DNA from: Rebecca billardiae RCC1528 | Lineage: Eukaryota; Protista; Haptophyta | Direction of reading: 5' to 3' | NCBI GenBank assembly: GCA_965240325.2 | Contig: OZ251223.1 | Coordinates: forward strand, 3,472,001 to 3,536,000 | Length of the DNA stretch: 64,000 nucleotides | In this document: in pieces, positions 47,434 through 64,000 of the stretch | Numbering within the stretch: the stretch's first letter is position 1 | How the letters are laid out: each line of letters begins with the position of its first letter | Made by a program: the position numbers and the translations under genes | Notes under the pieces: model-generated | Seen by the model: the letters and a program-made list of their open reading frames with translations, nothing else | What the model was told of the DNA's origin: nothing | Databases searched by the model: none

Positions 47434-47677
47434 CGCCGCGAAAGTCGAGAGTGGTGAGCACTGAGCAGATCGAGCCGCCGCGCCGAAAGAAAACCGGTTG
47501 ACATCAAGCTTACCACCGCACGGAAATCCGGCCGGCTCACCGCCGTGGGTCCGGATGGGCGGCCGAATCCGGCTGCTGGCGCCAAGTTTCCGGTGCAACG
47601 CTTTTTCCGCTGCCGTGCTGATTGCCGCGCAGCAGATCCAGGGTGGCGGAAGGCGCCGCCGCCGGCAGAATAGCATC

Positions 47678-49441
47678 ATGGCAGCCTCGCTCAATGGGGG
47701 CGCTGAGCACGTGGGGCACCCCACGCCGCTTCTCGACCACCTTGCGCCGACGACATTCCGTGCGAGCTGCCGTCGTATCGCATCGCTTCTGATCTCGACC
47801 TCAGTCGTCGTGCCCACCTTGTTCTGCTTTGTGTACTACCTGGTGATGCCGCTCGTGCGCCGCTTCAGCCGGCGCGCGGCGCACGAGATCCCGGGCGGGA
47901 TAGTGAACCCCGACATGACGCCCGTGGACTTCAAGCCGTACTTCCCCATCAACAATATCGGCGAGTGGATCCTGCTCGTGCTGCTCACGTGCGCGTGCTT
48001 CTTCAACTTCTTGGTCGCGGGGTCGACCTTTGTCATCTTCATGCGGCGCCGGATGCAGCAGTGCTGCGGGTTCCCGCCGCGGTACCGCGCGGCGTCCGGA
48101 GTCACCGAGGGCCTCCTCGAGACCGCCGTCTCCGTCGTCGTGCCATGCTACCTCCCCAACGAGCAGTACCTCATCAACGAGACGATCGACCACATCCTGC
48201 ACAAGCTTCGGCACGCGGGGCAGCTCAATCTCTACATCGTGTACAACTCGCCGACGGCGCTGCCGATCGAGGAGGAGCTGCGCGCGCGCGAGCTCACGCA
48301 GGCGGGCGTGCCCCCAGGCCGCACGCTCGTCGTGCGGCGCATCGAGGGCTCCACCTCGAAGGCAGAGAACCTGAACGCCATCTTTGAGGTGATTGAGGAC
48401 CGGATCACGGCCATCTACGACGCGGACCACCACCCCGACCCGCACTCGCTCGAGCTGCTGCTGCGCAAGCTGCAGAACCACCAGGTGGACTGCGTGCAGG
48501 GCTCGACGTACATCCGCAACACGTCATCCGGCCTCATGTCGCGCGTGATCGACGCCGAGTTCTTCGTGACGTACTTCATCTACTTCATGTCCCTGCAGTT
48601 CATCGCGCGCACGGCCTTCTTCGGAGGCTCCAACGCCGTCTGGCGGACGGCGGCGCTGCAGGGCGAGAAGTTCTCCACGTCGATGCAGACGGAGGACATC
48701 GACTTCGCGGCGCGCGCCATCCTCAAGGACAAGCGCATCCGCTTCTGCCCCGAGGCGCGCTCGGGCGAGCTCGCGCCGTCCAGCATGGGCGCGCTGTACA
48801 AGCAGAGGATGCGCTGGGCGATGGGGTGGGAGCAGGTGACGCTCGAGCACCTGTCGACCGTGCGTCGCTCGGGCATCCCGTGCTCGCGTAAGATGGGCGT
48901 GCTGTACATGCTGCCGATGCGCTGGCTGCTCGCCTTTCTGTCCGTCGTGGCGGCCATCGTGACGCCCATCCTCTGTCTCGTCTTCCCGCCCCAGATCTGG
49001 CCCCTCGCGCTCGACTTTCTGTTCACGCTCGGCTTCCTCGAGTCAACGCTGCTCGTCACGTGCACGCTGCTGGAGAGCATCTACCACGAGGCGTTCGTGC
49101 AGTGCATCTTCGTCGCGGCGTTCATGGTGTGCTCGCCACTCTATCTGGCCCTGCAGGTGCTGATGCTCCTGGCCTCCCTCTATCGCATCCGCACAGGCAG
49201 CACAGGCGGTTGGGTCGTCACGGCTCGCGCAGTGGCCGGGGCGGGCGGCGGCGGCGCGCAGCCGAATGCGCCCACGTCCGGTCAGGGCGCCAGCGGGTTG
49301 GGAGCTGCGGCGGGCGCGCTTGAGGCTGGTCGGGCTCCCGGGCAGCGGCCGCTGCTCTGGCATGGCTTCGAGCGCTTCTGTGGTCCAGACGACTACGGGA
49401 CGCAGCCACGTGGCCTGGGGCCGATGCGACACACGCTGTGA
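47678..49441 (+). CDS. Processive GT2 glycan synthase (cellulose-synthase-like superfamily), intronless
   Basis: VVVPCYLPNE, SKAENLN, IYDADH, TEDID, QRMRW (D,D,D,QxxRW), flanked by TM segments. Confidence 0.9.
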   Translation: MAASLNGGAEHVGHPTPLLDHLAPTTFRASCRRIASLLISTSVVVPTLFCFVYYLVMPLVRRFSRRAAHEIPGGIVNPDMTPVDFKPYFPINNIGEWILLVLLTCACFFNFLVAGSTFVIFMRRRMQQCCGFPPRYRAASGVTEGLLETAVSVVVPCYLPNEQYLINETIDHILHKLRHAGQLNLYIVYNSPTALPIEEELRARELTQAGVPPGRTLVVRRIEGSTSKAENLNAIFEVIEDRITAIYDADHHPDPHSLELLLRKLQNHQVDCVQGSTYIRNTSSGLMSRVIDAEFFVTYFIYFMSLQFIARTAFFGGSNAVWRTAALQGEKFSTSMQTEDIDFAARAILKDKRIRFCPEARSGELAPSSMGALYKQRMRWAMGWEQVTLEHLSTVRRSGIPCSRKMGVLYMLPMRWLLAFLSVVAAIVTPILCLVFPPQIWPLALDFLFTLGFLESTLLVTCTLLESIYHEAFVQCIFVAAFMVCSPLYLALQVLMLLASLYRIRTGSTGGWVVTARAVAGAGGGGAQPNAPTSGQGASGLGAAAGALEAGRAPGQRPLLWHGFERFCGPDDYGTQPRGLGPMRHTL

Positions 49442-50121: not shown

Positions 50122-50237
<116 letters not shown>

Positions 50238-50435
50238 GACTACTACAATCTATGCGACTACATCATGACATAAATTGATGTGATGACAATGTCCGCCCCG
50301 ACGGCGACATTATGATGAAGTCGACAACAGTATATCTTCAATCTATCTAGCGATATCTAGTTACATCATGCTGCATGCACATGCACTGACTGCTCATGTC
50401 TGACTGAACTCTTCTGTGCTGATGAACTCTGAAAC

Positions 50436-53400
50436 CTATAGGTGCAGGGCTGACCGTTGGCGAATCGCCTTGGCGAGCTTGGCCGAGCTCCCTGCTTGTA
50501 CATCATCATGGTTGTCTCCAAGCGTCTTCTTGTACGTCGCATCTGCCAGCCGCTGGTAAGTCCTGCCAGCAAATTGCTGCTGCTCGGTCGTATCGGCCAT
50601 CTGTTGCACGTGCCGCGCGCGGGAATGCAGAGCGGGCGCGCAGCCGTCGGTGAGTGGCTGCGCACAGACGGTATACGCGTGGCGCGACACGCGGGCGCGC
50701 AGGGCGCCTTGCGCACCCGACGCTCGAGAGCTCGCAGCGCGATGCGGACGAAGTCTTGCTGCCTGTTGTTGTCGACCCACTTCTTGACGGCCGGGTAGAA
50801 CGTGTCATAGAGGTACTCCTTACGCTCCTCGGTGGTCACGGAGAACTCGCGGATCTCGTCCCAAAGCTCAGGCATCTGCACGCGCGAGAGGGTGCGCGCG
50901 TTGGGAGGTGTCGCGAGTGAGCTGGCGCCGAGCACAAGGGCAGGTGCGTGGGAGGGCACTCTGAGGGGGGAAAGGGGGTGGGGGGCGCCGTGGGCGCGCA
51001 CCTCATCCGCGAGCGCGTTGCCCTTCTCGGCCTCGAGGGCGATCGCCTCCTCGACGGTGAGCGAGAACATGCGGATGGCGCTCTTCTGGTCCACCACCCA
51101 CTGCATCAGCTCGCGCGCCACCTGCAGCTGCGTGCGGTGCAGCCCGATCGCCAGCGCGTCCTCCTCCAGCCGCTGCTCCTCGAGGTGCGAGTCCGCCTTG
51201 CCGGGCGGCAGCTTGGCCCGCATGCCGCGCTTCGCGCCGTGGGACGAGAGCAGCGACGAGACGATCGGGTGGTCCGGCGACTCGTTGCTGATCGCGTCGT
51301 CCAACGGCGTGTTGCCGTGGTTGTCGGTGATGTTGATGTCGATGCGCGGCACCGAGAGGAGGTAGGTGACGGATGAGATGCGCACGCACGACGCGGCGAC
51401 GTGCAGCGCTGAGCGGCCGAGCGAGTCCTGCTCGTTCGGGGAGCAGCGGAAGCGGATGAGGCGCTGCAGCATGGCCACGTCGTCCGAGCACGCCGCGTCG
51501 CACAGGTTGTGCGCCACGTCGAAGTTGCCCAGCGTCGCGCCCTGCGCGAGCAGCATCTCGGCGCACGCGTCATTCTCCGAGAGCAGCGCATCCTGCAGCG
51601 GCGTGATGCCCCAGCGGTCGCGGATGTTCACGTGCCCGCCGTGCTCGAGCAGCATCGCGCAGTTCTCGGCCTTCCCCTGCGCCGCCGCCACGTGCAGCGA
51701 GGCGCGCCCGTCCGCGTCGCAGTGGTTCACGTCCGCGCCGAAGCGGCAGAGGAACTTGAGCTCGCTGTACCCCTCCGTCTTGGCAGCGGCGGAGCACAGC
51801 TTGTCGACGAGGTCCTTGGAGCCGAGGCGCGCGCCCGCCATCCACAGCAGCTCGGCCATGCCCTCCTGCTGGTGGCGCAGCGCGTCGTTGAGCGGCGTGC
51901 CGCCGCGCTCGTCCTCGACGTTCACGTCGCCCGACAGGCTGATCAGCAGCTTGACGATCTCCTTGTGCCCGCCGCACGCGGCGAGGTGCATGGCGCGGCG
52001 GCCGTCGTGGTCGCCCAGGTTGACGTCGATGCTGGTCGACGAGAGCACGCCGCGCACGGCGCTCAGGTCGCCCGCGGCCGCGGCGGTGCACAGGCGAGAG
52101 AGGTGCAGCTGGCGCCGGCGCTCGCGCGCCTCCTCGATCACCTGGCGCGCGCGAGGCGCGGGCGGTTGGGGGCGCCAGGTTCAGGCAGGGTGCGGCGGGA
52201 GGGCGGGAGCGCGGCGGGTCCAGCGCGAGCACACCACGGGCTGCACGCCGGGCGGTGGCGGCGCGCGGCGTGGCACGCGGGCGGCCGGGCGCGCTTTCCG
52301 CAGCTCAGCACGCAGCACGCAGCAACCCGCGCGGCGGCGCGCACCTGCGTGAGCTTGTCAGCCTCCTTCTGCTCCTCCTTCCCACCGAGTGCGTCGTCCT
52401 CGTCGTCCTCGAAGAAGTCGGCCTTCTCCTCCATCTCGACCATCCACTGCTCGTCGCCGGTCCCGCTCCGCTGGTCGTTGAGCGACGAGCGGCGCGACTT
52501 GGCCGTTCGGCCCGAGGTCTTCGAGTTCTTCGAGCCGGTCGACTTGCCCGACTTGCCGCCGTTCCCTGCGCCCGCGCAGAGGGCCGAGTCGCGCGGCGGC
52601 GACGCGCGCGGGCAGGCGAGGCTTGGTCAGTGGGAACGCAGCGCGGGGCGCGCGCTCGCAGGCTTGCGCGCGCTCGCAGGCTGGCGCGGGGCGCGACGCA
52701 GGCCGCGGGGCGCACCTTCGTACGCGCGCATCGCGCTGTCCATGATGATGTCCTCGTGGTCGGGGAACGTCTTGAGCAGCGCCTTGAAGCTGTCGCGCGA
52801 GAAGGCGAAGACGACCGTCTCGGGGCCGCTCATCGTGCGCGCGTTCTTGAAGTGGCGCAGGTTGAACGTGAACGCCATGCCGCCCACGGTCGCGCCCGCG
52901 TACCGCGAGTCCACCTCCGCCTCCGCGTCGTCGTCGCCGTCGCCGTCCAGCTCCTCGTACAGCTCGACGCCGCCCGACTTGATGATGATCAGCTCGTTGC
53001 ACGCCTCGCCGATGCGGAAGACCATCGCCTCGGAGTCGATCCGGCGCTCGCGCATCTTGGAGGCCATCAGGTCCTTGAACGCCTCCGAGCACGGCTGGAG
53101 CAGCACGCTGTCGCCCACCAGGTGGCGGTTGGTGTGCAGCGAGACGTCGAGCTGCAGCGCGGTCGGCAGCAGGTCGTACACCTGGTCCGACTGCATGCTC
53201 GACAGCGACGCGTCCTTGAGCCGGTTGCGGAAGAACGCCTCGATCTGCGCCTTGAGCTCGGGCGGCACGTTGATGTGCGCGACGTACGACTGCACAATCT
53301 CGAGCTGTGCGCGCTTGGCCACGATCTCGTCGTCCTGCTTCATCACGAGCGCCGAGATCTGGCCGACCGTCCACGCGTACACGGTCATGTTGATGATCAT

Positions 53401-56400
53401 CGCGCACACAAAGTAGGCGAGCTCCGCGTAGTTCGACGGCAGCTGCGGCATGCCCAGCGTGGTGAGCATCGTCAGCACGAACCACAGGCAGAGGCCGTAG
53501 TGCGAGGCGAGTGTCGAGTTCAGGCGCGCGTCCGGAGCCTCGACCGCCACCTCGTTCGCCTCGAGCAGCTCCCACCACGTCACCGCGGGCTCCGGCGAGC
53601 TCACGTACAGGTCGGGCTTGAACGAGCACAGGTTCCAAAAGCACGCGCAGATGTGCGCCGTGTACATGAGCACGCCCAGGTAGAGGACGAGCCCGGTGCG
53701 CAGGTCGTCGTTCGGCCGCGTCTTCAGCCAGCCGAGCACCGCCTGCCGCACGTACCGCAGGTTGATCATGCGGAAGCTGCGCAGCACGAACTGGAGCGCC
53801 GAGTTCGCGCCGAGCGCCAGCGCGAAGATGTTGTGCGGCCAGCACGTGAACAAGTCGAGCAGGCACTCGGTCGAGAGGTAGTGCTGAGCGATCTGCTTCG
53901 CGCTGTACACGACCGCGCCGGACTCGTTCACGTACGAGAGGCGGAAGCGAACGACGATGCGCAGCATGTAGAGCACGTCGAGCACGATGGGCACAATCAT
54001 GAGCGCGGGCACGTTCGACGCGCGCCCGGCGAAGCAGATCTGCAGCGGCACCATCCACGCGTCGTAGCTGCAGAAGAGCACAAACGCGCGGTGGAGCCAC
54101 TTGTACGCGCTCGAGTCGTGGCGGACGATCAAGGACGGGATGTCGCTGGCTGGCTGCGCTGCGGACGGGTTGAGCTGGTGGTAGGCGTTGGCCATGCCCA
54201 GGGCGGCCGAGATCTTCAGCCAAGTGCCGCGCCAGCCGCGAGAGTTGTCCTGCCCGCTCGCCACCGGGCCTGCTGCTTGCTCGAGCCACGCGCGCGATTC
54301 CAAGCCGTCCAGCACCTGAGACCACTTGGCAATGTCCGAGCCGCCGTCCTTGGCCTTGTTCTTCTCCTCCTCCTCGCGCAGCAAGGCGCGCGGGTCCGAA
54401 TCCACCGAGCCAGAGTCATCATCCGTGGGCTGCGTCGCGTCCTCCGACACGAGGAGCCCGAGGTTGTCCCTGAACCACTGGTCGAGCTGCGCCTCACCGA
54501 CCTCGCTTGGCAGCGCGATCGCGGACGTGATGAGCCGGTGCAGCGCCTTGTGCTCGACGGGCTCCGATGGCGACACACGACCAGCCGAGATATTCAGCCG
54601 GAGGCGGTCGACGATCGCTTCTGCCACACCCGGCGACGAGAGCAGCTGCGCGGTGGCGCGCGAGCTCTCCTCCTCCGAGAGGACCAGCTGCTCGGCCTGG
54701 CCCTTGCCGGACGTCATCCGCTTCCACTTGCTCGAGCCCTTCTCCGCCGGGATCACGGCGAGCTGCGTCGCGCTCAGCCTGTTGCTGGACTCTGCAGCTG
54801 CCTCGAGTGCGCTGGTGAGCACCCACGAGACGACGCCGACATAGAACTGCACCTCGGTCAGCACCCTGTTCGGCGGGGGCTTCGGAGCCGCGGCCTCGGA
54901 CATGCGCTGCATCATGGACTTCCTCGCATTGCTCGGAGTCTGCGGCTTGGACGTCCCGCTGCTGGACGACGATTTGCTGTCATCGGAGCAGCTGGACGAG
55001 CACGACGAGTCCTCCGAATCCGAGAGTTCAACGACATCGGCACCGCCGTCCGCCGAGCCGTTGTCAGCATCCTCATCGTCGGAGTCCAGCATGGCCGCTC
55101 GCTTCGGGACCATCGCAGTGGACTGCGGCATCGAGTCCAGAGAGGCGATCGTGGCAGGTGGGCCACGAGGAGCCTCGACGATGCGAGCGTCCGGCGGAAG
55201 CTGCGAGATCTCGGCCAGCATCTCCTCGTGGTGGTCGGCGAACCGCTCCTCGCCCTGCATGTCCGCCGCAGACGCCGGCATGACCGCGGTCGTCTGCAGC
55301 GCGCGCTCGAGCAGCTGGTCCTCAGGGCCAGTCTCCGCAGCCGTCACCTCCTTGCGGTGCCGCGGGCCGACGTTCTGCCGCGTCGCCACCTCCACCTCCG
55401 CCGGAAGCAGCTGCAGCAGCAGAGACAACTTGTGCAGGCGCTGCTTCAGGTCAAGGCCGCCGTCCACCTCGAACTGCACGCCAAAGCACAGGCGGTACAC
55501 GCCGTTCGAGTCGTGCACCGGTCGCATCGACAGCAGGTTCTGGAACGTCTGCCCGTTCTTGCGGTAGTTGGTGATCTTGACGAAGCAGTCCGCGCCGCGC
55601 CGCAGCGTGTCCTGGATGATCGCCACGGACGCCGGCTCCGTGCGAGGGCCCTGCAAGAAGCGGCAGTTACGACCCTGCGCCTCGCGCTTCGAGTAGCCCG
55701 TCACGCGCCCAAACTCCTTGTTCGTGAACAACATCGGGTTGCCCGAGATCGCCATGTCCGACAGCACGATGCACGCGGGGAAGTCCTCGGCGAACGACGC
55801 GAACGAGTAGATGAAGCCCGCAAGGTCGTCCGGCACCTCGTACTTGTCCCAGATCAGCCCGCGGCTCGAGTCGATGCGGTCGATCGGCGGAACCATCGAC
55901 TCGACGAGCGAGTCGCAACCGCCAGACTTGATCCACTTCGGGAACAGCTCGCCCGTCAGCTTCGACGTCACCTCCGCCGCCTTCTTCTCGAACGAGGCGA
56001 AGTCGAGCGACCGAGCCGTGCCCGAGGACATGCCCAGGTGCTTCTCGCAGATCTGACGCATGCGCACGTCGCGCGCACGCCCGTCCATCTTCGACAGCTT
56101 CTTCGCCTCGCTGAAGAAGTCGACGAGCGAGCCCTCGTTCGTGCGCTGCAAGAACTGGCGGAACGACGCCTGCGCCTGCTCGTTCGTCATCAGCTTCTCG
56201 AGCGACTGCTCGGCGTCGAGCGTCCACTGCAGCTTGGCGAACATCACCTGCGCCTTGCGGTGCTGCTGCGCCTTCGACTGCGAGTCCACGCGCACCTCCT
56301 TCGACGCGAACGCAGCAGGCTGAGCGGCGGCCGGCATCGTGCGCGGCAGCAGCTGACGCAGCTGCGCCAGCGCAGAGCGCTCGCCCTCCGACTGCTGCTC

Positions 56401-58712
56401 GGCCCACGAGAGCACGCCCAGCGAGTACCGGTACTCGCCGTTCGTGTCGCGCACGGGCGTGAGCGACAGGTCGTTCGTGAAGCGCGAGCCGTCCTTGCGG
56501 TAGTTCGTCACCTGCACGTGCAGCTCAGTCATCTTGCGCAGCGCGCGCACCATCTTGGACACAATCTTGGGCTCGGTCGACGCGCCCTGCAAGAAGCGGC
56601 AGTTCCGGCCCTCAACCTCGGACTTCGGGTAGCCCGTCACGCGAGCGAAGCCGCCGTTGCAGTACATCACCGTCACGCCCGGCACCGTCATGTCCGTGAT
56701 CGCCACCGCGATCGGCAGCGGCTCCACAGCAGCCTTGAGCGCGCCCAGCCACGTGCCGTCGCCCACGGACGGCACCTGCCCTGACGACAGCGCCTGCAGC
56801 AGCTGCACGCTCGAGTGGGGAAGACTGAAATCGCCGCCGCCGCCCATGCCCATGCCCATCGGCTGCGACATCGGCTGCGCCATCGGCTGCGACATCGGCT
56901 GCGACATCGGCTGCGCCATCGGCTGCGCCATCGGCTGCGGCTGCGCGTACGACGGCTGAGGCGCGCCGTACCCGCCGCCCATGCCGTTCATCCCGCCGCC
57001 GCCCATCCCGCCGCCGCCCATCATCGGCGGAGGCGCCATCGGCGTCGAGCCGAATGGCACCGGCGGCTCCGGCGGGGCAGCAGCGCCAGAGATCTCGGCC
57101 AGCATCTCCTCGTGGTGGTCGGCGAACCGCTCCTCGCCCTGCATGTCCGCCGCAGACGCCGGCATGACCGCGGTCGTCTGCAGCGCGCGCTCGAGCAGCT
57201 GGTCCTCAGGGCCAGTCTCCGCAGCCGTCACCTCCTTGCGGTGCCGCGGGCCGACGTTCTGCCGCGTCGCCACCTCCACCTCCGCCGGAAGCAGCTGCAG
57301 CAGCAGAGACAACTTGTGCAGGCGCTGCTTCAGGTCAAGGCCGCCGTCCACCTCGAACTGCACGCCAAAGCACAGGCGGTACACGCCGTTCGAGTCGTGC
57401 ACCGGTCGCATCGACAGCAGGTTCTGGAACGTCTGCCCGTTCTTGCGGTAGTTGGTGATCTTGACGAAGCAGTCCGCGCCGCGCCGCAGCGTGTCCTGGA
57501 TGATCGCCACGGACGCCGGCTCCGTGCGAGGGCCCTGCAAGAAGCGGCAGTTGCGACCCTGCGCCTCGCGCTTCGAGTAGCCCGTCACGCGCCCAAACTC
57601 CTTGTTCGTGAACAACATCGGGTTGCCCGAGATCGCCATGTCCGACAGCACGATGCACGCGGGGAAGTCCTCGGCGAACGACGCGAACGAGTAGATGAAG
57701 CCCGCAAGGTCGTCCGGCACCTCGTACTTGTCCCAGATCAGCCCGCGGCTCGAGTCGATGCGGTCGATCGGCGGAACCATCGACTCGACGAGCGAGTCGC
57801 AACCGCCAGACTTGATCCACTTCGGGAACAGCTCGCCCGTCAGCTTCGACGTCACCTCCGCCGCCTTCTTCTCGAACGAGGCGAAGTCGAGCGACCGAGC
57901 CGTGCCCGAGGACATGCCCAGGTGCTTCTCGCAGATCTGACGCATGCGCACGTCGCGCGCACGCCCGTCCATCTTCGACAGCTTCTTCGCCTCGCTGAAG
58001 AAGTCGACGAGCGAGCCCTCGTTCGTGCGCTGCAAGAACTGGCGGAACGACGCCTGCGCCTGCTCGTTCGTCATCAGCTTCTCGAGCGACTGCTCGGCGT
58101 CAAGCGTCCACTGCAGCTTGGTGAACATCACCTGCGCCTTGCGGTGCTGCTGCGCCTTCGACTGCGAGTCCACGCGCACCTCCTTCGACGCGAACGCAGC
58201 AGGCTGAGCGGCGGCCGGCATCGTGCGCGGCAGCAGCTGACGCAGCTGCGCCAGCGCAGAGCGCTCGCCCTCCGACTGCTGCTCGGCCCACGAGAGCACG
58301 CCCAGCGAGTACCGGTACTCGCCGTTCGTGTCGCGCACGGGCGTGAGCGACAGGTCGTTCGTGAAGCGCGAGCCGTCCTTGCGGTAGTTCGTCACCTGCA
58401 CGTGCAGCTCCTTCATCTTGCGCAGCGCGCGCACCATCTTGGACACAATCTTGGGCTCGGTCGACGCGCCCTGCAAGAAGCGGCAGTTCCGGCCCTCCAC
58501 CTCGTACTTCGGGTAGCCCGTCACGCGAGCGAAGCCGCCGTTGCAGTACATCACCGTCACGCCCGGCACCGTCATGTCCGTGATCGCCACCGCGATCGGC
58601 AGCGGCTCCACAGCAGCCTTGAGCGCGCCCAGCCACGTGCCGTCGCCCACGGACGGCACCTGCCCGGACGACAGCGCCTGCAGCAGCTGCACGCTCGAGT
58701 CGGGCAGGCTGA

Positions 58713-58743
<31 letters not shown>

Positions 58744-60611
58744 CATGCCCATGCCCATCGGCTGCGACATCGGCTGCGCCATCGGCTGCGCCATCGGCTG
58801 CGCCATCGGCTGCGCCATCGGCTGCGACATCGGCTGCGGCTGCGCGTACGACGGCTGAGGCGCGCCGTACCCGCCGCCCATGCCGTTCATCCCGCCGCCG
58901 CCCATCCCGCCGCCGCCCATCATCGGCGGAGGCGCCATCGACGTCGAGCCGAATGGCACCGGCGGCTCCGGCGGGGCAGCAGCGCCAGAGATCTCGGCCA
59001 GCATCTCCTCGTGGTGGTCGGCGAACCGCTCCTCGCCCTGCATGTCCGCCGCAGACGCCGGCATGACCGCGGTCGTCTGCAGCGCGCGCTCGAGCAGCTG
59101 GTCCTCAGGGCCAGTCTCCGCAGCCGTCACCTCCTTGCGGTGCCGCGGGCCGACGTTCTGCCGCGTCGCCACCTCCACCTCCGCCGGAAGCAGCTGCAGC
59201 AGCAGAGACAACTTGTGCAGGCGCTGCTTCAGGTCAAGGCCGCCGTCCACCTCGAACTGCACGCCAAAGCACAGGCGGTACACGCCGTTCGAGTCGTGCA
59301 CCGGTCGCATCGACAGCAGGTTCTGGAACGTCTGCCCGTTCTTGCGGTAGTTGGTGATCTTGACGAAGCAGTCCGCGCCGCGCCGCAGCGTGTCCTGGAT
59401 GATCGCCACAGACGCCGGCTCCGTGCGAGGGCCCTGCAAGAAGCGGCAGTTACGACCCTGCGCCTCGCGCTTCGAGTAGCCCGTCACGCGCCCAAACTCC
59501 TTGTTCGTGAACAACATCGGGTTGCCCGAGATCGCCATGTCCGACAGCACGATGCACGCGGGGAAGTCCTCGGCGAACGACGCGAACGAGTAGATGAAGC
59601 CCGCAAGGTCGTCCGGCACCTCGTACTTGTCCCAGATCAGCCCGCGGCTCGAGTCGATGCGGTCGATCGGCGGAACCATCGACTCGACGAGCGAGTCGCA
59701 ACCGCCAGACTTGATCCACTTCGGGAACAGCTCGCCCGTCAGCTTCGACGTCACCTCCGCCGCCTTCTTCTCGAACGAGGCGAAGTCGAGCGACCGAGCC
59801 GTGCCCGAGGACATGCCCAGGTGCTTCTCGCAGATCTGACGCATGCGCACGTCGCGCGCACGCCCGTCCATCTTCGACAGCTTCTTCGCCTCGCTGAAGA
59901 AGTCGACGAGCGAGCCCTCGTTCGTGCGCTGCAAGAACTGGCGGAACGACGCCTGCGCCTGCTCGTTCGTCATCAGCTTCTCGAGCGACTGCTCGGCGTC
60001 AAGCGTCCACTGCAGCTTGGTGAACATCACCTGCGCCTTGCGGTGCTGCTGCGCCTTCGACTGCGAGTCCACGCGCACCTCCTTCGACGCGAACGCAGCA
60101 GGCTGAGCGGCGGCCGGCAGCGTGCGCGGCAGCAGCTGACGCAGCTGCGCCAGCGCAGAGCGCTCGCCCTCCGACTGCTGCTCGGCCCACGAGAGCACGC
60201 CCAGCGAGTACCGGTACTCGCCGTTCGTGTCGCGCACGGGCGTGAGCGACAGATCGTTCGTGAAGCGCGAGCCGTCCTTGCGGTAGTTCGTCACCTGCAC
60301 GTGCAGCTCCTTCATCTTGCGCAGCGCGCGCACCATCTTGGACACAATCTTGGGCTCGGTCGACGCGCCCTGCAAGAAGCGGCAGTTCCGGCCCTCCACC
60401 TCGTACTTCGGGTAGCCCGTCACGCGAGCGAAGCCGCCGTTGCAGTACATCACCGTCACGCCCGGCACCGTCATGTCCGTGATCGCCACCGCGATCGGCA
60501 GCGGCTCCACAGCAGCCTTGAGCGCGCCCAGCCACGTGCCGTCGCCCACGGACGGCACCTGCCCGGACGACAGCGCCTGCAGCAGCTGCACGCTCGAGTC
60601 GGGCAGGCTGA

Positions 60612-60642
<31 letters not shown>

Positions 60643-62510
60643 CATGCCCATGCCCATCGGCTGCGACATCGGCTGCGCCATCGGCTGCGACATCGGCTGC
60701 GCCATCGGCTGCGCCATCGGCTGCGACATCGGCTGCGGCTGCGCGTACGACGGCTGAGGCGCGCCGTACCCGCCGCCCATGCCGTTCATCCCGCCGCCGC
60801 CCATCCCGCCGCCGCCCATCATCGGCGGAGGCGCCATCGACGTCGAGCCGAATGGCTCCGGCGGCTCCGGCGGGGCGGCAGCGCCAGAGATCTCGGCCAG
60901 CATCTCCTCGTGGTGGTCGGCGAACCGCTCCTCGCCCTGCATGTCCGCCGCAGACGCCGGCATGACCGCGGTCGTCTGCAGCGCGCGCTCGAGCAGCTGG
61001 TCCTCAGGGCCAGTCTCCGCAGCCGTCACCTCCTTGCGGTGCCGCGGGCCGACGTTCTGCCGCGTCGCCACCTCCACCTCCGCCGGAAGCAGCTGCAGCA
61101 GCAGAGACAACTTGTGCAGGCGCTGCTTCAGGTCAAGGCCGCCGTCCACCTCGAACTGCACGCCAAAGCACAGGCGGTACACGCCGTTCGAGTCGTGCAC
61201 CGGTCGCATCGACAGCAGGTTCTGGAACGTCTGCCCGTTCTTGCGGTAGTTGGTGATCTTGACGAAGCAGTCCGCGCCGCGCCGCAGCGTGTCCTGGATG
61301 ATCGCCACAGACGCCGGCTCCGTGCGAGGGCCCTGCAAGAAGCGGCAGTTACGACCCTGCGCCTCGCGCTTCGAGTAGCCCGTCACGCGCCCAAACTCCT
61401 TGTTCGTGAACAACATCGGGTTGCCCGAGATCGCCATGTCCGACAGCACGATGCACGCGGGGAAGTCCTCGGCGAACGACGCGAACGAGTAGATGAAGCC
61501 CGCAAGGTCGTCCGGAACCTCGTACTTGTCCCAGATCAGCCCGCGGCTCGAGTCGATGCGGTCGATCGGCGGAACCATCGACTCGACGAGCGAGTCGCAA
61601 CCGCCAGACTTGATCCACTTCGGGAACAGCTCGCCCGTCAGCTTCGACGTCACCTCCGCCGCCTTCTTCTCGAACGAGGCGAAGTCGAGCGACCGAGCCG
61701 TGCCCGAGGACATGCCCAGGTGCTTCTCGCAGATCTGACGCATGCGCACGTCGCGCGCACGCCCGTCCATCTTCGACAGCTTCTTCGCCTCGCTGAAGAA
61801 GTCGACGAGCGAGCCCTCGTTCGTGCGCTGCAAGAACTGGCGGAACGACGCCTGCGCCTGCTCGTTCGTCATCAGCTTCTCGAGCGACTGCTCGGCGTCA
61901 AGCGTCCACTGCAGCTTGGTGAACATCACCTGCGCCTTGCGGTGCTGCTGCGCCTTCGACTGCGAGTCCACGCGCACCTCCTTCGACGCGAACGCAGCAG
62001 GCTGAGCGGCGGCCGGCAGCGTGCGCGGCAGCAGCTGACGCAGCTGCGCCAGCGCAGAGCGCTCGCCCTCCGACTGCTGCTCGGCCCACGAGAGCACGCC
62101 CAGCGAGTACCGGTACTCGCCGTTCGTGTCGCGCACGGGCGTGAGCGACAGATCGTTCGTGAAGCGCGAGCCGTCCTTGCGGTAGTTCGTCACCTGCACG
62201 TGCAGCTCCTTCATCTTGCGCAGCGCGCGCACCATCTTGGACACAATCTTGGGCTCGGTCGACGCGCCCTGCAAGAAGCGGCAGTTCCGGCCCTCCACCT
62301 CGTACTTCGGGTAGCCCGTCACGCGAGCGAAGCCGCCGTTGCAGTACATCACCGTCACGCCCGGCACCGTCATGTCCGTGATCGCCACCGCGATCGGCAG
62401 CGGCTCCACAGCAGCCTTGAGCGCGCCCAGCCACGTGCCGTCGCCCACGGACGGCACCTGCCCGGACGACAGCGCCTGCAGCAGCTGCACGCTCGAGTCG
62501 GGCAGGCTGA

Positions 62511-62541
<31 letters not shown>

Positions 62542-64000
62542 CATGCCCATGCCCATCGGCTGCGACATCGGCTGCGCCATCGGCTGCGACATCGGCTGCG
62601 CCATCGGCTGCGCCATCGGCTGCGCCATCGGCTGCGGCTGCGCGTACGACGGCTGAGGCGCGCCGTACCCGCCGCCCATGCCGTTCATCCCGCCGCCGCC
62701 CATCCCGCCGCCGCCCATCATCGGCGGAGGCGCCATCGGCGTCGAGCCGAATGGCACCGGCGGCTCCGGCGGGGCAGCAGCGCCAGAGATCTCGGCCAGC
62801 ATCTCCTCGTGGTGGTCGGCGAACCGCTCCTCGCCCTGCATGTCCGCCGCAGACGCCGGCATGACCGCGGTCGTCTGCAGCGCGCGCTCGAGCAGCTGGT
62901 CCTCAGGGCCAGTCTCCGCAGCCGTCACCTCCTTGCGGTGCCGCGGGCCGACGTTCTGCCGCGTCGCCACCTCCACCTCCGCCGGAAGCAGCTGCAGCAG
63001 CAGAGACAACTTGTGCAGGCGCTGCTTCAGGTCAAGGCCGCCGTCCACCTCGAACTGCACGCCAAAGCACAGGCGGTACACGCCGTTCGAGTCGTGCACC
63101 GGTCGCATCGACAGCAGGTTCTGGAACGTCTGCCCGTTCTTGCGGTAGTTGGTGATCTTGACGAAGCAGTCCGCGCCGCGCCGCAGCGTGTCCTGGATGA
63201 TCGCCACAGACGCCGGCTCCGTGCGAGGGCCCTGCAAGAAGCGGCAGTTACGACCCTGCGCCTCGCGCTTCGAGTAGCCCGTCACGCGCCCAAACTCCTT
63301 GTTCGTGAACAACATCGGGTTGCCCGAGATCGCCATGTCCGACAGCACGATGCACGCGGGGAAGTCCTCGGCGAACGACGCGAACGAGTAGATGAAGCCC
63401 GCAAGGTCGTCCGGAACCTCGTACTTGTCCCAGATCAGCCCGCGGCTCGAGTCGATGCGGTCGATCGGCGGAACCATCGACTCGACGAGCGAGTCGCAAC
63501 CGCCAGACTTGATCCACTTCGGGAACAGCTCGCCCGTCAGCTTCGACGTCACCTCCGCCGCCTTCTTCTCGAACGAGGCGAAGTCGAGCGACCGAGCCGT
63601 GCCCGAGGACATGCCCAGGTGCTTCTCGCAGATCTGACGCATGCGCACGTCGCGCGCACGCCCGTCCATCTTCGACAGCTTCTTCGCCTCGCTGAAGAAG
63701 TCGACGAGCGAGCCCTCGTTCGTGCGCTGCAAGAACTGGCGGAACGACGCCTGCGCCTGCTCGTTCGTCATCAGCTTCTCGAGCGACTGCTCGGCGTCGA
63801 GCGTCCACTGCAGCTTGGTGAACATCACCTGCGCCTTGCGGTGCTGCTGCGCCTTCGACTGCGAGTCCACGCGCACCTCCTTCGACGCGAACGCAGCAGG
63901 CTGAGCGGCGGCCGGCATCGTGCGCGGCAGCAGCTGACGCAGCTGCGCCAGCGCAGAGCGCTCGCCCTCCGACTGCTGCTCGGCCCACGAGAGCACGCCC
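50436..64000 (-). CDS. Giant (LOV-RGS-LOV)n - 6TM cation channel - C-linker/CNBD-like - ankyrin-repeat protein, 5'-partial; exons >64000..52716, 52565..52345, 52141..51002, 50875..50717, 50600..50436
   Basis: The 3789-aa ORF carries 9 GRNCRFLQG LOV motifs, 5 RGS-like domains, S1-S6, pore TTLGMP and a CNBD. GT-AG introns 52715..52566 and 52344..52142 join it in frame to the ankyrin ORF (LCTAAAAGDL, GRRAMHLAA, GRASLHVAA, GRSALHVAA, GNTPLDDA). The last two exons are less certain. Confidence 0.88.
51235..52105 (-). other. Ankyrin-repeat region (three similar blocks) of the giant gene
   Basis: Repeated LCxAA..., DxxGRxxxHxAAxxG and G(G/I/N)TPLxDA motifs, as in plant Shaker-type channel and glutaminase ankyrin tails. 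Confidence 0.92.
53345..54110 (-). other. Ion-transport domain S1-S6 of the giant gene
   Basis: YDAWMVPLQICF, LDVLYMLRIVVRFRLSY, IAQHYL...LLDLFTCWP, S4-like LRSFRMINLRYVR, AHICACFW, pore helix LWFVLTMLTTLG, S6 AWTVGQISALV. Confidence 0.92.
55205..64000 (-). repeat. Coding tandem array of 1899-bp (633-aa) units, about 4.6 copies visible; the last unit is 15 bp shorter
   Basis: Identical antisense ORFs recur at 55811, 57695, 59594, 61493 and 63392 (spacings 1884, 1899, 1899, 1899). Confidence 0.97.

Follow-up and report, generated by a model that had tools for sequence, protein, structure and literature searches.

Introduction

To our knowledge, all characterised natural light-gated channels are rhodopsins and channels controlled by LOV domains exist only as engineered tools; nor do we know of a receptor for blue-light behaviour in haptophytes, which are ecologically dominant. 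In the channelrhodopsins sensor and pore reside in one polypeptide, but the chromophore is retinal and the pore itself is the sensor. BLINK1 and BLINK2 also combine light sensor and pore in one chain; these proteins are synthetic, with LOV2 placed on a viral K+ pore. Here we describe a gene in a 64,000-nucleotide stretch of the genome of the haptophyte Rebecca billardiae RCC1528 (contig OZ251223.1, positions 3,472,001 to 3,536,000; hereafter the window, within which all coordinates are given) that is predicted to join a tandem array of LOV and RGS domains to a six-transmembrane (6-TM) channel, a cyclic-nucleotide-binding-like domain and ankyrin repeats in a single polypeptide.

The closest described relative of the array is helmchrome, a flagellar RGS-LOV photoreceptor of stramenopiles (Fu et al. 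2014, 2016, as cited in PMC8017926). Haptophyte transcripts encoding helmchrome-like combinations of LOV and RGS domains were found by Coesel et al. 2021 (PMC8017926), as undescribed proteins whose role is not known and with no mention of a channel. Channel fusions are absent from a 2026 survey of LOV architectures (PMC13737086), and two recent reviews of algal photoreceptors do not mention any. The initial annotation of the window knew of LOV-channel fusions only as engineered proteins; this has been superseded by a 2025 preprint (10.1101/2025.06.20.660589), whose list of 13 new LOV fusions includes a "LOV-voltage-gated potassium channel" of Pavlova sp. RCC6257. The accessible portion of that preprint holds a single remark on this protein, concerning an R-to-Q change in its LOV domain, with no experiments and no further analysis or characterisation, and does not describe RGS, cyclic-nucleotide-binding or ankyrin domains, an array or the pore. 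A LOV-channel fusion occurring in nature is therefore not a wholly new idea. The helmchrome origin, the array, the non-K+ pore, the change in the cyclic-nucleotide-binding domain and the ankyrin tail appear to be undescribed.

Results

Gene model and reading frame

On the minus strand, an open frame of 3,790 codons (52627-63999) runs off the window edge. As initially annotated, it passes without interruption from LOV and RGS domains through the channel to the cyclic-nucleotide-binding domain (CNBD), with the Pfam domains in that order. From the array to the channel, by way of a Ser/Asp-rich linker and a pre-S1 region, one frame keeps a GC content at the third codon position (GC3) of 0.81-1.00; because GC3 keeps this one frame across the LOV-to-channel junction, array and channel are placed in one gene. 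The frame terminates at the TGA at 52627-52629, which lies inside the first of three introns. The gene model was built with a relative, P0001 (described below), as guide in tblastn searches and by direct reading of the DNA. When spliced it comprises 4,364 residues with no internal stops, and ends at the TAG at 50436-50438. Codon usage and homology indicate that the window holds the 3' portion of a single genuine gene of haptophyte type, at least 4,364 codons of it, with the following parts.

Ends at 52716, minus strand: exon 1, carrying the LOV/RGS array, the channel and the CNBD
52566-52715, minus strand: intron 1, 150 nt, GTGCGC...CAG, containing the in-frame TGA 52627-52629
52345-52565, minus strand: exon 2, a spacer, Lys/Ser-rich and then acidic; open frame, GC3 0.93
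52142-52344, minus strand: intron 2, 203 nt, GTGCGC...CAG
50717-52141, minus strand: exon 3, ankyrin repeats and a conserved C-terminal region; Pfam Ank_2, 137 bits
50601-50716, minus strand: intron 3, 116 nt, GTGCGC...CAG
50436-50600, minus strand: exon 4, with the stop codon TAG 50436-50438

Two frame-preserving GT-AG introns had been proposed ahead of the ankyrin repeats. Two introns do precede the ankyrin exon, and its Ank_2 match bears out the predicted ankyrin tail; there are, however, three GT-AG introns in all, each of the form GTGCGC...CAG, and only intron 1 has a length divisible by three. The frame shift predicted by intron 2 is seen both in the tblastn frames and in GC3. Intron 1 has a GC content of 0.84/0.84/0.80 by codon position (0.83 overall), with no codon periodicity. 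Exon 2 is placed solely by its splice signals, open frame and GC3, and its likeness to the corresponding spacer of P0001 is one of composition only. The TGA at 52627 was considered as the true end of the protein and rejected, on the flat codon-position GC after 52716, the intron-like GTGCGC start and the continuation of the relative's open reading frame (ORF) into ankyrin repeats.

A helmchrome-like array of near-identical units

The upstream part of the frame is a helmchrome-like array of four full tandem units and a partial fifth, and the array carries on past the window edge. The order along the protein is LOV-B, RGS, LOV-A, followed by a low-complexity spacer rich in Gly, Met, Pro and Gln. 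The unit length is 1,899 bp (63999-62101, 62100-60202 and 60201-58303), except for the fourth unit (58302-56419) with 1,884 bp; the partial fifth begins at 56418. Across the frame Pfam finds PAS_9 nine times (470 bits together) and RGS five times, and the motif GRNCRFLQG occurs nine times, once in each complete LOV domain (9/9). The initial count of nine complete LOV domains with this motif, the tail of a tenth, and five RGS-like domains was thereby reproduced.

55465-63999, minus strand: helmchrome-like array, four full tandem units and a partial fifth
63988-63999, minus strand: tail of the tenth LOV domain (LOV-B), residues GVLS, cut by the window edge
63481-63786, minus strand: RGS domain 1, Pfam RGS
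63046-63363, minus strand: LOV-A copy 1, GRNCRFLQG, glutamine of GVQ retained
62089-62400, minus strand: LOV-B copy 1, GRNCRFLQG, Iβ Gln replaced by Leu (GVL)
61582-61887, minus strand: RGS domain 2, Pfam RGS
61147-61464, minus strand: LOV-A copy 2, GRNCRFLQG
60190-60501, minus strand: LOV-B copy 2, GRNCRFLQG
59683-59988, minus strand: RGS domain 3, Pfam RGS
59248-59565, minus strand: LOV-A copy 3, GRNCRFLQG
58291-58602, minus strand: LOV-B copy 3, GRNCRFLQG
57784-58089, minus strand: RGS domain 4, Pfam RGS
57349-57666, minus strand: LOV-A copy 4, GRNCRFLQG
56407-56718, minus strand: LOV-B copy 4, PAS_9 65 bits
55900-56205, minus strand: RGS domain 5, which alone scores 35.4 bits against a Pfam RGS cut-off of 23.9
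55465-55782, minus strand: LOV-A copy 5, the LOV domain closest to the channel, PAS_9 54 bits

DNA identity between the four full units is 99.1-99.7%, with 5-20 substitutions and one 15-nt deletion. Amino-acid changes among units 1-3 are few and all lie outside the LOV and RGS cores. From these differences the array looks like the product of recent amplification or of ongoing homogenisation. The longest period covered by the tandem-repeat program TRF was 500, below the 1.9-kb repeat. A Logan contig of one sequencing run (X1) differs from the last LOV-A (55387-55691) at 29 positions in 305 nt, and probably represents a paralogous or allelic LOV array from the same sample.

In common with helmchrome the array has paired LOV domains flanking an RGS domain. 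Proteins of Chromulina and Mallomonas with two RGS and four LOV domains are 50-53% identical, which confirms as homology the link to helmchrome drawn initially, and a Haptolina relative falls in a cluster at 57%. The array differs in that helmchrome is soluble and free-standing, with two RGS and four LOV domains, whereas the window array has at least 4.5 near-identical units, with at least nine LOV and five RGS domains, and is covalently fused to a channel.

LOV domains resemble photoactive LOV domains; the RGS contact motif is altered

In gapless alignments, LOV-A matches Arabidopsis phot2 LOV2 (4eep, E 2e-22), the aureochrome LOV domain and AsLOV2. LOV-B, again without gaps, is best matched by the LOV domain from a histidine kinase of solved structure (9vf7, E 1e-26), with VVD also among its matches. 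The adduct cysteine and both asparagines are present in LOV-A and LOV-B, and the Iβ glutamine is retained in LOV-A. In a confident AlphaFold2 (AF2) model of one unit (predicted local-distance difference test score, pLDDT, 81; predicted template-modelling score, pTM, 0.67), two α/β PAS cores surround a helical bundle (about eight helices) formed by the RGS domain at residues 183-312, and the model's fold matches are phototropins. Across 16 relatives the most conserved parts of the family are LOV-A, the helix that follows it and an RFADHHEEML-type motif.

The Gα contact motif of RGS proteins is not conserved, either here or in most relatives. The residues NEGSL lie under FSEEN of RGS5, so that S, E, E and N become E, G, S and L. 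Ser replaces the Asn in INIDF of RGS1, the contact residue of the α5-α6 loop. We take the aligned sites to be Asn88 and Asn128 of RGS4; Ser is found at the second of these contact sites in some active RGS proteins. Because the contact motif is not conserved, the predicted RGS domains can be called no more than putative GTPase-activating proteins (GAPs).

The region between array and channel

Three segments lie between the last LOV-A and the first transmembrane helix.

55201-55464, minus strand: helix after the last LOV-A (Jα-like, DGGLDLKQRLHKLSLLLQLLP) and motif RFADHHEEML, conserved over 16 family members
54898-55200, minus strand: Ser/Asp-rich linker, probably disordered; read from the translation, GC3 0.81-0.90 in the same frame
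54088-54897, minus strand: conserved pre-S1 cytoplasmic region of about 270 residues, specific to LOV-fused channels

The helix and RFADHHEEML region are identical or nearly so in P0001, and the motif opens a second contig, L002. The pre-S1 region aligns with P0001 at 29% identity over 309 amino acids (E 2e-17), and also with L002 and a third contig, L003; no relative of it was found in Pfam or the Atlas. In the AF2 model it is predicted, with low confidence, to be helical.

Channel, CNBD and ankyrin repeats

The membrane-spanning part of the protein and the domain that follows it are made up as follows.

53341-54087, minus strand: 6-TM channel core S1-S6, Pfam Ion_trans 46 bits (residues 3299-3550)
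53743-53784, minus strand: S4 (LRSFRMINLRYVRQ), with three Arg that are invariant in the family
53437-53463, minus strand: pore filter TTLGMPQLP, aligned to TTIGFGN of KCNH5
52717-53340, minus strand: C-linker and cyclic-nucleotide-binding(-homology) domain, Pfam cNMP_binding (residues 3652-3744)
52831-52887, minus strand: phosphate-binding cassette (VGGMAF...NART) in the CNBD

A 6-TM channel with C-linker and CNBD-like domain, as first annotated, is supported by the Pfam matches (for cNMP_binding, 28.8 bits against a cut-off of 27.5), by alignments to solved structures and by fold comparison. In a phmmer search of the PDB with the sequence from S1 to the CNBD, KCNH5 (E 4e-22), hERG and EAG1 (both about 1e-22) were best, in alignments that extend through the C-linker and CNBD. 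They were followed by the plant channels AKT1, SKOR and GORK (E 1e-14 to 1e-18) and KAT1, and by CNGA1/3, SthK and HCN1. The channel's AF2 model, of mediocre quality (pLDDT 58.6), was used for fold matching at the family level only; Foldseek placed Eag1, AKT1 and GORK at the top with 1e-17, the matched families spanning E 1e-17 to 1e-15. Of the label of CNG/Shaker-type channel that had been attached to the gene, the Shaker part does not hold: the channel is neither Shaker-like nor of K+ type, its filter being TTLGMPQ and its nearest solved relatives KCNH channels.

The filter TTLGMPQ has neither GYG nor GFG, its second glycine is missing and it contains no acidic residue; its placement against the TIGET motif of CNG channels is our own assumption. 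The pattern LG[MLV]xQLP is shared by the whole haptophyte channel family, which, since the filter reads TTLGMPQ without the K+ signature, is probably not K+-selective. In the phosphate-binding cassette the Arg is invariant, and Glu is replaced by Gly only in the window gene and P0001, the two LOV-fused sequences. This loss would fit a regulation that has been handed over from cyclic nucleotide to some other input.

The architecture combines features of several channel families. As in KCNH channels (EAG, ERG and ELK), a PAS-family domain lies N-terminal to a 6-TM core, C-linker and CNBD-like domain. The PAS domain of KCNH channels is flavin-free and nearer to S1, however, their filter is a K+-selective GFG, and they have no RGS domain, ankyrin tail or tandem array; KCNH channels have an N-terminal eag domain (PAS-cap plus PAS) that docks on the cyclic-nucleotide-binding homology domain, and the window protein has LOV domains on the N-terminal side, some 460 residues from S1. 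The plant channels AKT1, SKOR and GORK share the succession of 6-TM core, C-linker, CNBD and ankyrin repeats, but have GYG and a KHA domain, whereas the window channel is without GYG and yielded no KHA match. More generally, the G(Y/F)G filter of K+-selective members (KCNH, plant Shaker and HCN channels) has no equivalent in TTLGMPQ. CNG channels differ in their pore Glu (TIGET) and their intact cassette (GE...RTA), of which the window channel keeps the Arg and has Gly for Glu.

Relatives with and without the fusion

A search for the same architecture showed that the chain of LOV/RGS, channel, CNBD and ankyrin repeats recurs in P0001, and that the join of LOV-associated motif and channel recurs in L002. 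P0001 is a single, intron-less ORF of 2,567 residues on contig L001 (JGI sample 3300016954, 8,490 nt), with flanks that resemble untranslated regions (UTRs) and the Pfam domains PAS_9 (four copies), RGS, Ion_trans, cNMP_binding and Ank. It is 66-68% identical to the window protein in the LOV/RGS part, 46% from pre-S1 region to CNBD and 54% in the channel region alone, and its residues 2072-2504 match the ankyrin part at 47% identity. L001 is very probably a transcriptome contig, because sister JGI records cluster with MMETSP transcripts. A scaffold gap of 100 N (272-371) lies inside its LOV array, so that the repeat number is unsettled; upstream of the gap is what appears to be the true N-terminus, leading directly into LOV-B. 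L002, a metagenome contig with introns, begins with the post-LOV-A motif AMDMQGAERFADHHEEML and continues through the Ser/Asp linker, pre-S1 region, channel, CNBD (62% identity) and ankyrin repeats. A further member of this subfamily, L003, is truncated before any LOV domain is reached. The single-polypeptide architecture is conserved in relatives.

The Pavlova fusion (10.1101/2025.06.20.660589) resembles the window gene in being a natural haptophyte LOV-channel protein and is a possible orthologue. The R-to-Q remark fits either the GQNCRFLQG motif of P0001 or the Arg-to-Gln exchange in the Eα helix of LOV-A, without distinguishing the two.

A scan of metagenome contigs with the alignment from LOV-A to the CNBD gave no match, and among proteins of 570-1,820 residues none carried both LOV and channel, the search returning only LOV arrays or channels. 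The closest named channel relatives are proteins of Diacronema lutheri, with 32-39% identity. These and other relatives (P0002-P0006, from Diacronema lutheri and MMETSP/JGI records) are LOV-less paralogues of 2,100-2,700 residues with two tandem channel-CNBD-ankyrin modules per chain, an arrangement unusual for CNBD channels unless the gene models have been fused. Several soluble LOV-RGS-LOV relatives (e.g. P0020, P0021 and P0023) have polybasic ends (...GGRKKK, ...GGKKSKK), which recall the light-switched lipid-binding element of fungal RGS-LOV proteins (PMC6099885).

Discussion

Among possible functions of this predicted chain of LOV domains, channel and CNBD we rate a light-modulated cation conductance highest, and hold it to be somewhat more probable than all other outcomes combined when uncertainty in the gene model is counted in. 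Channel subunits would tetramerise like their solved relatives, which would give each channel dozens of LOV domains that bind flavin. Blue light would produce the cysteine-flavin adduct in the LOV domains, and LOV-A together with its strictly conserved C-terminal helix would pass a conformational change to a cytoplasmic gating ring made up of the pre-S1 region, the C-linker/CNBD and the ankyrin repeats. With about 460 residues between the end of the last LOV-A and S1, the route of coupling would be docking and not a rigid helix, comparable to the action of the N-terminal PAS domain on the cyclic-nucleotide-binding homology domain in KCNH channels. The resulting cation conductance would be modulated by light, would not be selective for K+ and would serve photobehaviour; many near-identical units would mean more photon capture per channel. 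Light gating of the pore is a step that we infer. A stronger version, in which this is a natural flavin (LOV)-based channel directly gated by blue light, with the LOV units as a multi-chromophore antenna whose number of copies determines how sensitive the conductance is to light, is possible but doubtful.

Several observations weigh against such a mechanism. The replacement of the Iβ Gln by Leu deprives LOV-B of the signalling glutamine, and LOV-A has Gln, invariant in 16 relatives, at the Eα position where phot2 LOV2 has an Arg that presumably contacts the flavin phosphate. The roughly 460 residues from the end of the last LOV-A to S1 include a low-complexity linker, so direct allosteric coupling is not obvious. 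There are many free-standing, soluble two-LOV (LOV-RGS-LOV) relatives of 574-912 residues, from which it follows that the array has a function of its own. The copy number of a 99%-identical array hinges on assembly quality. Finally, three sequencing runs, all from one sample, gave eight short contigs on 50400-56390 and no transcript evidence; one of the eight is unspliced across the border of exon 1 and intron 1, and the set looks like DNA from a sparse sample.

The alternative that survives best is that the array is tethered to the channel without gating it. An ordinary voltage-, cyclic-nucleotide- or Ca-regulated cation channel would then double as anchor or localiser of a photoreceptor array, which would signal through Gα and RGS, light-switched lipid binding or self-association, and any effect of light on current would be at most indirect. 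The soluble relatives, several of them with polybasic C-termini, would be expected under this explanation, as would the long disordered linker and the conservation of both the cassette Arg and the S4 arginines; fungal RGS-LOV proteins do work by light-switched membrane binding (PMC6099885). However, only the LOV-fused forms have the pre-S1 region and, in the cassette, Gly for Glu, which suggests co-adaptation of channel and array, and the Gα contact motif that signalling through RGS would use is not conserved. We consider tethering without gating a serious candidate, though distinctly less probable than a light-modulated conductance.

It is very improbable that the fusion is an artefact, with array and channel being separate neighbouring genes or the array having been collapsed or expanded in assembly, a doubt that had been raised with the initial annotation. 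The missing transcripts from the window genome leave room for it, repeats of 99% identity are hard to assemble, and GC-rich DNA yields long chance ORFs, such as one of 1,509 residues on the opposite strand. Yet codon-position GC follows one frame over the junction, the same junction occurs in two other organisms (P0001 and L002), and the repeat copies bear their own substitutions and a 15-nt deletion. An equally slight chance attaches to the PAS domains being flavin-free regulatory domains like the KCNH eag domain: the closest solved channels do carry a non-photoactive N-terminal PAS domain, and LOV-A and LOV-B each have one substitution at a usually conserved residue, but the adduct cysteine motif is complete in 9/9 domains, the Asn pair is conserved, as is Gln in LOV-A, and every best match is a bona fide photoactive LOV domain (E 1e-22 to 1e-27).

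If the proposed light-modulated conductance is real, a LOV-channel polypeptide found in nature would be a new kind of sensory mechanism for photobiology to test, and would offer optogenetics a flavin-based channel scaffold for which retinal is not needed. The extreme amplification of a photoreceptor module, whether recent or kept uniform, is a rare case for the evolution of sensor copy number.

Flanking features

Two features lie beyond the channel gene on its 3' side. A perfect (TA)57 microsatellite at 50123-50236, about 200 nt past the stop codon, probably belongs to the 3' UTR or terminator region. The neighbouring ORF on the plus strand (47498-49441, 647 residues) encodes a predicted family-2 glycosyltransferase (Glyco_tranf_2_3, 97 bits) and is convergent with the 3' end of the channel gene.

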